Positions 32,978 through 37,021 of a stretch of DNA of 64,000 bases are shown piece after piece. Position 1 is the stretch's first letter. Each line of letters opens with the position of its first letter. The translations under genes and the position numbers were made by a program. The notes under the pieces are model-generated. The model saw only the letters and a program-made list of their open reading frames with translations, was not told the DNA's origin and did no database searches. Location of the stretch: the sequence record NC_028899.1. One strand, written 5' to 3'.

Positions 32978-33820
32978 TTAGGCGTAACCCATCTTTTTTG
33001 CCTTGCGATTCTGCTTCTTCACACGTGCAGATCGCTGGCGCCGGTTCTTTTGATGTTCTTGATTGTCACGGCGCGCTTGAGCAGCGTAATTCGTACGCTC
33101 GATGTGTTTGACTGCATCTGCGAAATACTCGTCGACAGCTTTGCGGAAGAACTCTTTCGATACGAGTTCCCACTCAGTCATGTCTTCGTCCGTCAGATAG
33201 TCGAACGGCTTCGTGGCATAATCCATCGTAGTCTTCGCGATGTTCTGCGTAAAGAACGACAGGATAGCCACCGTCATCGCTTCGCAACGATCGCTGTAAT
33301 GCAGATGCTGGCGATGACGATAGAAAACGCCTTGAATACCTTTCAGACGGAAGTTGCTTTCGACGAAACGCATCAGTTCCATCCCGATGCCTGACAAGCC
33401 TTTTCGCCCAGAATACTCAATGATCGAGTCACATGCGTGCTTCATGACCACATGGAAGTAATTCGGCATGTAGGCGTCGATCAATGCTTTCTTCTTGCAG
33501 TTGTTCTCGTATTCCTGCATCGACCTTTCAGTGAGTTCGAGAACCGTCTGCGTGAATAGGAACAAAGACCAGTGATACGTCTTGGCCTGTTCCATCGTTT
33601 TGACCAACTTGTCTTTGAATTCCTTGTAGCGGAAACCTTGCAGTGTCCACTCGCGGTCTCGCTCGGCCTCATAAGCCTTTTGTATGTTTTCGATTGCGCG
33701 ACGATCCTTGCGATTCGGTTTCTTCGACTTGACTTTACGTTGTCGAGTCGAGAACCAGATAAATGCGAGGACGATTGCACCAAGAGTCAGTGCCCCGAAA
33801 AAGACGTGGTCGATGTTCAT
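32978..33820 (-). CDS. Membrane-anchored hypothetical protein with a basic C-terminal tail
   Basis: N-terminal TM segment VFFGALTLGAIVLAFIWF; K/R-rich C-terminus. Confidence 0.7.
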   Translation of the reverse strand: MNIDHVFFGALTLGAIVLAFIWFSTRQRKVKSKKPNRKDRRAIENIQKAYEAERDREWTLQGFRYKEFKDKLVKTMEQAKTYHWSLFLFTQTVLELTERSMQEYENNCKKKALIDAYMPNYFHVVMKHACDSIIEYSGRKGLSGIGMELMRFVESNFRLKGIQGVFYRHRQHLHYSDRCEAMTVAILSFFTQNIAKTTMDYATKPFDYLTDEDMTEWELVSKEFFRKAVDEYFADAVKHIERTNYAAQARRDNQEHQKNRRQRSARVKKQNRKAKKMGYA

Positions 33821-33848: not shown

Positions 33849-34253
33849 TCATTCCGGAACATAAGAAAGTACAACGTAAGCGATACCAGGTTCGAGTCCG
33901 ATCTTGTCGCCAAGAATCGGAATCAAGCTGATACCGTCCAATGACGACATATAAAGCGCCGTCAGCCCAGCTTTGTCGTTTTCGAATTCACATTCACACG
34001 TGAATGCGCCATCGTCTTCGACAATTTTGCCAGCCTTAATGCACTGGCTAAAATCGGTTTTGGAGGGATTCTTCCCCTGGATGTACTGCTGGAGTGCGTA
34101 GGCCAAACGAGCCGGTCTAGCGCCCTCGTTGAAGGCCGCAAAGTGCTTTCTCCACTCATCCAGATCAGTCTCGTACTCAGGCGGTAAGAAAATGTCCACA
34201 ACCTGATTGGTACGAGACCGGATAGTCTTTTGAACTAACCGGTCCAGGCTCAT
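33849..34253 (-). CDS. Hypothetical protein (134 aa)
   Basis: ORF coupled to the upstream gene (GGAG RBS in its last codons). Confidence 0.65.
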   Translation of the reverse strand: MSLDRLVQKTIRSRTNQVVDIFLPPEYETDLDEWRKHFAAFNEGARPARLAYALQQYIQGKNPSKTDFSQCIKAGKIVEDDGAFTCECEFENDKAGLTALYMSSLDGISLIPILGDKIGLEPGIAYVVLSYVPE

Positions 34254-34254
34254 A

Positions 34255-34530
34255 TTACTCCTCGTTCAAAAGTAAAAGTACTTTGTTGAAAACATCTTGC
34301 CAGGTATCGAACGGGCCTTCAATGAGATTGAGTTCCAGTTCGGTTTCCAGTTCAGACAGAATGTCCATGTGATCCAGCGCATCCAGATCCCCGCTCTGGA
34401 AAGACAACGCCAGGAATTCACGGAACTCCGCACTGTTCTCGACCGCAGACTTGCGAACCGTTTTCGAATCGTACGACGCTACAACATTGACAAGCACTCG
34501 TCGTGCTTTTTGTGCTTTGGCCTCAGCCAT
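34255..34530 (-). CDS. Acyl-carrier-protein-like protein lacking the phosphopantetheine serine (DAL instead of DSL)
   Basis: SFQSGDLDALDHMDILSELETELELNL..FDTWQDV aligns by eye to ACP [35 protein letters not shown]; 91 aa, acidic C-terminal half. Confidence 0.65.
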   Translation of the reverse strand: MAEAKAQKARRVLVNVVASYDSKTVRKSAVENSAEFREFLALSFQSGDLDALDHMDILSELETELELNLIEGPFDTWQDVFNKVLLLLNEE

Positions 34531-34584: not shown

Positions 34585-34779
34585 TCAGTCGCGCTTTATG
34601 TTGTATAAATCTTTCAATTCAGGATGGCTGACGCGAAGTTGAATCATCCAGGAACTCGGCACGTCATTGAATTCGAAAAACATCTGAAAAGCCTGCCCTT
34701 TCTCGTCCACAACCTGACAGAGAATGTGTTTGTCCTGAGGCAGTTTCTTCATTTGTTCGATAATGTCTGCGGGAGTCAT
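34585..34779 (-). CDS. Small hypothetical protein (64 aa)
   Basis: ORF with GAGG RBS. Confidence 0.6.
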   Translation of the reverse strand: MTPADIIEQMKKLPQDKHILCQVVDEKGQAFQMFFEFNDVPSSWMIQLRVSHPELKDLYNIKRD

Positions 34780-34804: not shown

Positions 34805-35295
34805 AGCAAAAAGGGCGGTACAGAGTGGCCGAAGCCACCCCATACCGTGCCTAAGATGAAACAGAACGTGCATCCCAAGGTCGTCGAACCTACCGTCCAG
34901 GAATTACAGACGACGACTATGGGCTGCAAGCTACTCAGCGAGTGTCTCCCGACATATCGCATAACTTACAACTGGTCCCGAAAAGACCCCTTACAATCGA
35001 TGCGGGCGTAACACACACGAAGGCCCAAGATACGCTCCGGCGCCGCGAACGCGCGCGGCGCCGATAAGCTGCCAGGCATCACCAAGCTCTTAAAGGAGAT
35101 CTCATATCGGCGGCACTAAAAGGCGGCCATGAGATGTGATTGCGATGCGGGATGGAAACCGATTTCGAGACCGATTCCTATCGCGCGTACGACATGTGTG
35201 TTTCGCAGGCTTTTCACCTGAGTGAGGGGCTAAGTGGCAACCAAGCGGCCAATCCCAACACATCTGACTTGCACAGATCTTCAGACGCCATCTTG
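34805..35295 (-). ncRNA. Candidate large structured ncRNA (~490 nt) ending in a UUCG terminator hairpin
   Basis: No credible ORF. Many stems (11-bp 35037-35064; ATCTCAT/ATGAGAT; CGCAT/ATGCG; GTCGTCG/CGACGAC), long-range pairs, a 9-bp pseudoknot candidate, and GU wobbles favouring minus. Confidence 0.6.
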
Positions 35296-35354: not shown

Positions 35355-36383
35355 TTACGGTTGCAGCGCGTCGGTTTGGTCCGCTGCGGCGGCGTCGACT
35401 GCGGGCGCGGCAGCTTGTTCAGCCGTTGCGTCCGCTGCCGGTGCCTGTGCTTGAGCGGCATCGGCTTCCACCGGTGCTGCCGTTTGCGCCGCATCCGCAG
35501 CTTGCTCCGCCGGAGCGCCAGCGAGTGCCGCAGCCGTTGCCGGGTCTGCGTTCACTTCCGGCGTTTGCGCCAGAGCTTCCGGCGAGTGGTCGACTTCTTG
35601 CGAAGCGTCACCAGCCGGTGCAGCTGCTTGATCCGCAGCGGGGGCTTCAGCTTGAGCAGCGTCCGCTGCCGGGGCTTCTGCCTGTGCTGCTTGCTCACCG
35701 ACGGCGGGGTCGACTTGCGGGGCAGCTTCTTGAGCCACGCCTGCATCAGCCGCGCCGGCCGGTTGAGCTTGTGCAGCAGCGTCGTTCGTCACGTCAGCAG
35801 CTTGGGCCGGTGCTGCGGCTTGTGCATCTGCTGCGGGAGCGTCGACTTGTGCAGCATCTGCGGCCGGAGCCGTTTCTGCTGCTGCATCGCCTGCGACTTG
35901 CTCGGGTGCCTGTTCAGCTTGCGCTGCACCTGCGTCCACGCCAGCCGCGGGATCTTGTTGGGCGTCCGCTGCCGGAGCAGCTTGTTCCGCCGTACCGGCA
36001 TCCGCCGGTTGTTCTGCTTGAGCGGCGTCGGCTGCGGGAGCCGCGTCCGTTGCGCCAGCTTCTTGCGCCGGGGCGTCGCCCGCCGGTTGTGCTGCTGCGC
36101 CTGCGTCTTGTGCCTGACCTGCTGCGACCTGGCTGTCCAGTGCAGCTGCTGCTGCGCCGGCTGCTGCCGCTGCGGCCACGCCGTTGTCGCCGAGGCCGAG
36201 TGCTTCGTTCGTCTTGTCGCCGAGACCTTCGACGTTGTCCGTCACCACGACCGGATGCTCTTCCTTCTTCTTGTGGAAGAGGTTGACGATGCGGTCGACC
36301 ACGTGTTCGGGCAGTGCAGCGAGGGCTTCGACGGCCAGCAGTTCGGCTTTCAGTTCGTCGATGACTTTGTGGATGATACTCAC
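35355..36383 (-). CDS. Acidic Ala/Gln/Pro/Asp-rich intrinsically disordered protein with an N-terminal helix
   Basis: APAADAAQAE-type repeats; AAGGAAAG RBS; highly biased codons. Confidence 0.75.
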   Translation of the reverse strand: MSIIHKVIDELKAELLAVEALAALPEHVVDRIVNLFHKKKEEHPVVVTDNVEGLGDKTNEALGLGDNGVAAAAAAGAAAAALDSQVAAGQAQDAGAAAQPAGDAPAQEAGATDAAPAADAAQAEQPADAGTAEQAAPAADAQQDPAAGVDAGAAQAEQAPEQVAGDAAAETAPAADAAQVDAPAADAQAAAPAQAADVTNDAAAQAQPAGAADAGVAQEAAPQVDPAVGEQAAQAEAPAADAAQAEAPAADQAAAPAGDASQEVDHSPEALAQTPEVNADPATAAALAGAPAEQAADAAQTAAPVEADAAQAQAPAADATAEQAAAPAVDAAAADQTDALQP

Positions 36384-36637: not shown

Positions 36638-37021
36638 TTAAAGGCCGATGGGCTGGAACCAGATCACTCCGAGTACGGGGACCGACGCAATCACGAACGC
36701 GTAAGCAAGCTTACAGAACGTGTGTAGGAGTTGATCTCCCATTGCGCTAATGCGCTTTTGGACTCGAAGACAATCGATGGTCCAGTGAAGGATGAATTCA
36801 GCGAGCGCAAGTCGAAGCGCAAGTCCGGGATAAAACAACCAGACGACTCCGAACGTTCCGGCTGCCTGTATCAGACAGTGGGCACTCAAGCCGAACCACC
36901 ACGGGAAGACTTCCACCTGCTTGTTCTTGATGTCGGACAGGAATTGCCCTTGACCAGGAAAGTCGAAGTACAGGTGAACAGCCAGCAGTGCAACCACTGC
37001 CAAGATAAACGTCTCGAACAT
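36638..37021 (-). CDS. DUF3307-family membrane protein
   Basis: HLYFDFPGQ, HCLIQ, EFILHWTID and DQLLH motifs with TM helices; CAGGAG RBS. Confidence 0.75.
   Translation of the reverse strand: MFETFILAVVALLAVHLYFDFPGQGQFLSDIKNKQVEVFPWWFGLSAHCLIQAAGTFGVVWLFYPGLALRLALAEFILHWTIDCLRVQKRISAMGDQLLHTFCKLAYAFVIASVPVLGVIWFQPIGL

Follow-up and report, generated by a model that had tools for sequence, protein, structure and literature searches.

We found that ORF203 of Ralstonia phage RSF1 encodes a protein that has the fold of an acyl carrier protein (ACP) and descends from a type II ACP, a conclusion that we regard as established, and that the position of the phosphopantetheine serine is occupied in it by an alanine (Ala51). 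Because of this alanine, phosphopantetheinylation of the RSF1 protein at the canonical site is impossible, and judging from its sequence it is unable to carry the cofactor there. The variation among its homologs is better read as dispensability of the attachment serine in the whole family than as a decoy invented by RSF1. Binding to other proteins is the most likely mode of action of the family, and our leading interpretation of the sequences, which we hold tentatively and with some doubt, is that it constitutes a cofactor-independent ACP-fold binding module and not a carrier.

The window analyzed here, a stretch of 64,000 nucleotides, is the last 64 kb of RSF1 (AP014927 / NC_028899; genus Chiangmaivirus; 222,888 bp), and window positions, as used in Table 1, equal the positions of the RSF1 record minus 158,888; over 3 kb around ORF203, the two sequences are 100% identical. 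The relatives of RSF1 include the phages RSL2, RsoM3USA and FLC4 and the Burkholderia phages FLC6, FLC8 and SURPRISE13. The annotation of SURPRISE13 lists a tubulin-like protein, split multisubunit RNA polymerases and a putative nuclear shell protein, on the basis of which the RSF1 group can be assigned to the phiKZ-like, nucleus-forming jumbo phages. Members of the ORF203 family were found only in RSF1/RSL2-type (Chiangmaivirus-like) jumbo phages, in a single copy, and the homologs, all of which come from related jumbo phages, span 35–97% identity. The family HMM, run over the window and the complete SURPRISE13 genome, detected no paralog of ORF203. RSF1-like sequences were also present in soil and rhizosphere metagenomes and in assemblies of root RNA libraries, which shows their natural occurrence; a contig assembled from an RNA library does not prove transcription. 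Reads were compared for four runs, two of soil DNA and two of root RNA libraries, and the codon of residue 51 was not among the differences displayed.

Table 1. Positions of the features of the ORF204–ORF201 region in the 64,000-nucleotide window
Feature	Position	Strand	Basis
ORF201, 280 aa; closes the unit; N-terminal segment hydrophobic	32978..33820	(-)	sequence
ORF202, 134 aa, translationally coupled downstream gene; candidate partner	33849..34253	(-)	sequence, synteny
ORF203, ACP-fold gene, 91 aa + stop; phrog_31629	34255..34530	(-)	ORF and translation, PHROG match, fold model
GAGGAG, C-terminal Glu-Glu codons of ORF203, doubling as the ORF202 Shine-Dalgarno sequence	34258..34263	(-)	sequence
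Acidic helix II ('recognition helix') of ORF203, residues 50–65	34336..34383	(-)	column conservation; mapping via HMM alignments to ACP
GCG codon of Ala51, the residue that opens helix II and stands where ACP has its phosphopantetheine serine	34378..34380	(-; plus-strand cgc)	sequence, profile alignment to ACP DSL, model
ORF204, 64 aa; facultative gene that opens the unit	34585..34779	(-)	sequence, comparison
Strong hairpin resembling a terminator (14 pairs, then a T-run), upstream of ORF204	34816..34847	(-)	sequence

ORF203 matched the profile of phrog_31629, a family of unknown function, over its full length (residues 1–91 of 91, E 5e-58), and this was the sole family match obtained with its own sequence. 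The GenBank form of the gene product has 80 aa and starts at V12. The N-terminal residues MAEAKAQKARR are kept as protein in every homolog, and the 91-aa form is used in other records; we therefore took 91 aa as the correct length. As a more general observation, the RSF1 and RSL2 GenBank records place starts too far downstream, giving 80 instead of 91 aa for ORF203 and 85 instead of 134 aa for ORF202, and the longer forms of both are supported by N-terminal residues that all relatives conserve. ORF203 is an acidic protein (pI 4.46), with 13 D/E against 1 K/R in residues 46–91 and a mildly basic N-terminal half. A first-pass annotation of this DNA had described an acidic protein with an alanine codon, GCG, at 34378–34380, and both the sequence and the translation confirmed this description; the stretch that it quoted, GDLDALDHMDILSELETELE, is present in ORF203 as given. 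Its characterization of the product as ACP-sized held in part, in that the protein is indeed small and acidic, but it differs from AcpP in having ~14 extra N-terminal residues, which form a basic and almost invariant start of helix I, and ~7 extra residues in loop 1, and in lacking a separate helix III.

The fold was modeled with AlphaFold2 from the family alignment (pLDDT 87.2, pTM 0.77). The model contains helices at residues 2–20, 27–30, 33–40, 51–65 and 77–90, and its helix II begins at residue 51, as in ACP. When the model was compared with known structures using VIA-align, 14 ACP chains scored Z 6.1–9.8 over 65–80 residues, and the next non-ACP chain scored Z 2.2. A Foldseek-independent scan of 48,161 representative PDB chains gave a similar picture, Z values reaching 9.9 and the top 50 consisting almost wholly of carriers (ACP, PCP or DltC); the alignments of the model to ACP/PCP chains covered 70–82 residues (Z 6.1–9.9), which places the protein within the carrier fold. 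The proposal in the first-pass annotation that the protein mimics ACP, for which a structure prediction was the suggested check, thus agrees with the top ranking of carrier proteins by both VIA-align and the chain scan. The structure neighbors of ORF203 in the ESM Atlas were PP-binding clusters (TM 0.60–0.68), and the top matches in a Foldseek search of the PDB were ACPs, with weak E-values (best 0.35, in the PDB and in BFVD). A Foldseek search of the AFDB clusters with the same model was uninformative.

We further examined the relationship to ACPs at the level of sequence profiles. A profile built from 13 homologs and run against all PDB sequences yielded 105 matches, and all 60 of the matches listed were carriers, namely 59 ACPs and one D-alanyl carrier protein (best E 0.0024); in these alignments, the DSL of the family lined up with the DSL of ACP. 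The Pfam PP-binding family PF00550 was matched by 10 of the 20 family members (best E 3e-5), and the NCBIfam ACP models TIGR00517 and PRK00982 by 14 of the 20 (best E 1.6e-6). RSF1's own ORF203 matched neither Pfam PP-binding nor the NCBIfam ACP models even at E ≤ 10, and its sequence identity to cellular ACPs is ~13–22%. With the RSF1 sequence itself, no match to PF00550 was thus obtained, and homology is shown through the relatives, the family profile and the fold. Some homologs already carried such a label from automatic annotation: 'acyl carrier protein-like superfamily protein' in the case of SURPRISE13 gp207, and 'acyl carrier protein' in that of one JGI gene.

That an alanine stands at the phosphopantetheine-serine position of this ACP-fold protein, as the first reading of the DNA had suggested, was supported by the sequence, the profile alignment and the model. 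Over 20 family sequences, residue 51 is S in 10, A in 4 and T in 2, and F, P, Q and L occur once each; the site ranks 75 of 91 by entropy/conservation and is thus among the most variable columns. The preceding Asp (D50) is invariant across the 20 sequences. Among the seven isolated phages, Ala is confined to RSF1, and Ser is present in the remaining six. The 13 closer relatives carry Ser (9), Thr (2) or Ala (2), and the canonical LDSLD is present in 9/13; the Thr-bearing members show 55–76% identity, and Ala also appears in an independent metagenome contig of 219,912 bp, whose copy of ORF203 is 97% identical. An exhaustive profile search added eight more full-length members with 35–54% identity, in which the site reads A, A, F, P, Q, L and, in two members, S. 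On a maximum-likelihood tree, in which many deep branches were unresolved, the site had changed at least nine times, with Ala arising at least three times and Thr twice.

These results do not bear out the idea that an invariant Ser was specially replaced in RSF1. The first-pass annotation had also held that the presence of Ser in all close homologs would imply a private mutation or a sequencing error; the isolated phages come near to this pattern (6/7 Ser), but it fails in the wider family. The serine conserved in PF00550 is replaced by Ala51 in RSF1 and in the 97%-identical copy. A sequencing error was rejected as the source of Ala51, because the second assembly has the same Ala, which accordingly represents a trait of the lineage. 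As for the homologs with a canonical LDSLD, which make up half of the family, they could well be modifiable by host AcpS, and a carrier or holo-dependent role may exist in those phages.

We next consider how the rest of the protein has been conserved. Within helix II, D50, E60 and E62 are invariant and D53, D56, I57 and L65 are nearly invariant among the 20 sequences. In the alignments these invariant and nearly invariant residues fall on the acidic and hydrophobic positions of helix II in ACP, so that the acidic docking surface is retained; the conservation of its acidic residues may partly reflect constraints of the fold. All family members have 91–93 aa. The dN/dS ratio of ORF203 (Nei-Gojobori) was 0.27–0.31 between RSF1 and six relatives and 0.15–0.17 between Ser-bearing lineages (SURPRISE13 versus the RSL2 group). 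Together with the constant length, these values, which are well below 1, indicate that ORF203 is maintained under purifying selection. The difference between the two comparisons (~0.29 versus 0.16) perhaps reflects some relaxation on the RSF1 branch after the loss of Ser. The dN/dS of ORF202 was lower, ~0.09–0.10 by the same method. Within the Ala clade, ORF203 shows 3 non-synonymous and 5 synonymous differences, compared with 0 and 4 in ORF202. For the same phage pairs, identity was 70–79% for ORF203, 89–92% for ORF202 and 52–68% for the fast-evolving ORF201.

The gene is embedded in a conserved minus-strand unit. The stop codon of ORF203 (TAA, 34255–34257) is followed by 1 nt and then by the ATG of ORF202, and the spacing is 1–3 nt in homologous loci. 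The role of GAGGAG as a Shine-Dalgarno sequence may explain the conserved ...LNEE end of ORF203. The order of genes encoding 64 aa, 91 aa, 118..139 aa and ~280–300 aa is kept down to 35% identity; so is the order of three convergent genes that follow the unit, which include a piece of the non-virion RNA polymerase beta-prime subunit. ORF202 follows the ORF203 homolog in every locus examined, shows stronger conservation than ORF203 and contains FLPPEY as an invariant motif. Neither ORF202, ORF201 nor ORF204 matched any Pfam family, and Atlas feature searches with ORF202 and ORF201 returned sub-threshold leads only. A structure model of ORF202 had a pLDDT of 48.5 and provided no usable structure; the complex prediction for ORF202 and ORF203 gave an ipSAE of 0.01 with ORF202 poorly modeled, and this value counts neither for nor against an interaction. 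ORF201 is probably anchored in the membrane via a hydrophobic stretch, FFGALTLGAIVLAFIWF, and varies from 52 to 68% identity among relatives, as given above. ORF204 is absent in FLC6, FLC8 and one RSF1-like contig from a soil metagenome, and is present but unannotated in SURPRISE13. In the soil contig without ORF204, position 34587 is joined to 34789, with 24 other letters in place of the intervening sequence. Given the hairpin located just upstream, ORF204 to ORF201 may form a separate transcription unit.

We then compared the ORF203 family with known ACP systems. It resembles AcpP (PF00550; TIGR00517/PRK00982) in its carrier fold, in the start of helix II at the attachment position and in being small, acidic and free-standing, and the two share the helix II pattern D-x-L-D-x-x-(D/E)-(I/L) ... 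E-x-E-x-x-(L/F). In addition to the insertions described above, it differs from AcpP in having Ala for Ser in RSF1 and a variable site across the family, and in being encoded by phages with no carrier-pathway genes nearby. Other phage ACPs, those of Erwinia Eneladusvirus phages, Flavobacterium jumbophages and Caulobacter phage Seuss, are also small ACP-fold proteins of large phages with no obvious pathway; however, they have no detectable sequence relation to the ORF203 family, and their structural similarity to it is weak (TM ~0.5). Mitochondrial ACP (NDUFAB1/ACPM), which is a structural subunit of complex I and of LYRM complexes and thus provides an example of such a use of the ACP fold, was among the best structural and profile matches. 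Interactions of mitochondrial ACP use the acyl-phosphopantetheine arm. In this respect it differs from the RSF1 protein, which cannot bear such an arm. A further likeness is to the apo-ACP of E. coli, an ACP fold that acts without the prosthetic group on an ACP-client enzyme and hence offers a precedent for a permanently apo protein.

A non-modifiable Ser36 mutant of ACP has reportedly been used to show the inhibition of glycerol-3-phosphate acyltransferase by apo-ACP. In the ORF203 family, the ACP-derived fold and the acidic face of helix II have been kept and the serine is not under selection; as the binding module that we tentatively favor, the small acidic protein would bind its partners through the ACP-like helix II. 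The mechanism that we prefer among those considered, which by analogy is plausible though still doubtful, is that of a decoy of host ACP clients, in which the phage protein and host ACP would compete for the basic sites where ACP docks on its client enzymes in lipid and envelope synthesis. According to a review, apo-ACP inhibits glycerol-3-phosphate acyltransferase and stops the growth of E. coli; this is a phenotype of overexpression of the host's own ACP, and ORF203 is a decoy candidate by analogy only. SpoT, by contrast, is described in that review as showing no interaction with apo-ACP. SpoT, which the first-pass annotation had listed as a possible target of the decoy, is accordingly disfavored, and inhibition of the acyltransferase is a better precedent for a decoy in RSF1.

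A more elaborate form of this proposal, which we consider rather unlikely as a whole, is that the nucleus-forming RSF1/RSL2 phages possess a dedicated mimic of ACP that no longer needs the cofactor serine; it would occupy the ACP-docking sites of host lipid or envelope enzymes (PlsB, or LpxA/LpxD or Fab enzymes) and, with the co-transcribed membrane protein, would throttle or redirect host membrane synthesis during infection.

The repeated replacement of the serine (by A, T, F, P, Q or L), with the acidic helix II and the gene preserved, is hard to reconcile with a carrier role. We nevertheless considered the possibility that the protein is a true holo-carrier in most relatives, with a private loss in RSF1, such that the Ser-less copies of RSF1, P0015, P0021 and others are decaying or dead. 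The textbook LDSLD in 9 of the 13 closest homologs, the matches of family members to ACP models down to E 1.6e-6, the raised dN/dS on the RSF1 branch and the presence in the genus of a large radical-SAM / 2OG-oxygenase cluster are consistent with this possibility. However, Ser was lost at least seven times, and the Ser-less copies have nonetheless kept their length, the invariant residues and the synteny, with a dN/dS well below 1, the Ala clade included. Moreover, the radical-SAM cluster is retained in RSF1 (85% identity) and occurs in phages without an ORF203 gene, and neither a PPTase nor an acyl-loading enzyme is annotated in SURPRISE13; indeed, its genome annotation, which includes Pfam and SUPFAM terms, lists no PPTase, FAS, PKS or NRPS gene. 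We therefore judge this explanation to be quite improbable.

The gene neighborhood bears on another explanation, namely that ORF203 is an adaptor or a structural or regulatory subunit that docks on ORF202 or on the membrane-anchored ORF201, as mitochondrial ACP does in larger complexes. Such a role, which we regard as the main alternative, although a minority possibility, would fit the stop and start codons lying 1–3 nt apart with the Shine-Dalgarno sequence inside the last two codons of ORF203, the gene order of 91 aa, 118..139 aa and ~300 aa kept to 35% identity, the high conservation of ORF202 (dN/dS ~0.09), and the PDB fold matches, among which are ACPs with a structural role in complex I and in other assemblies. 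Against it, ORF203 evolves much faster than ORF202 (70–79% versus 89–92% identity), which is unusual, although not impossible, for obligate partners. The same rapid evolution is often seen in genes for host interaction, and together with the strongly acidic C-terminal half (13 D/E versus 1 K/R) and the variable accessory DNA formed by ORF204 and its surroundings, it could suggest an acidic nucleic-acid mimic or anti-defense protein, in which the ACP fold would be a scaffold for a negative surface that blocks a host DNA-binding defense or restriction protein. Nothing specific favors this last explanation, however, and the invariant acidic residues are exactly those of ACP helix II, with no DNA-like ladder of charges; we regard it as very unlikely.

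A literature search for the ORF203 family, serine-less phage ACPs, phage inhibitors of ACP and ACP in Chimalliviridae found no study, although ACPs of other jumbo phages are mentioned in passing; the SURPRISE13 paper does not discuss the gene. What appears to be new here is the polymorphism of the attachment site within one orthologous family, which, as far as the sequences indicate, argues directly for cofactor independence. RSL2 and RSF1 provide a natural pair of Ser and Ala alleles. ACP is among the most connected bacterial proteins, with links to the fatty acid, phospholipid, lipid A, biotin/lipoate and Fe-S pathways; if the cofactor-independent binding module is real, a phage copy of the ACP docking face without the cofactor would constitute a natural, genetically encoded probe or inhibitor of this network. 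If the decoy proposal were also true, serine-less ACP modules in unrelated phages might represent a general and undescribed phage strategy against the host ACP interaction network.

Several other features were observed in the same region and elsewhere in the genomes. ORF204.1 (36383 to 35355 on the minus strand, i.e. 35355–36383 (-)) encodes a low-complexity protein of 342 aa rich in Ala, Gln, Asp and Pro; DNA matches to relatives break at this gene and metagenome sequences show indels there, which indicates that it is variable in length. ORF205 (36638–37021 (-)) encodes a small multi-pass membrane protein whose homologs in SURPRISE13 and metagenome contigs are annotated as DUF3307; it lies in the same minus-strand block and, with ORF201, gives the block a membrane flavor. 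The radical-SAM cluster (~73.8–86 kb in the RSF1 record; L009:23000-36300 in SURPRISE13) is conserved in the genus; besides four radical-SAM genes it contains two DHFR-like genes, two 2OG-Fe(II) oxygenases and a cupin. A link between the Ser-less state and the loss of this cluster was considered and rejected, because RSF1 retains it; as the cluster is also found in phages without a gene of the ORF203 family, the two do not co-vary. A radical-SAM homolog with 35–44% identity is present in Agrobacterium phage Atu_ph07, Sinorhizobium phage Phosso and a Pseudomonas jumbo phage.
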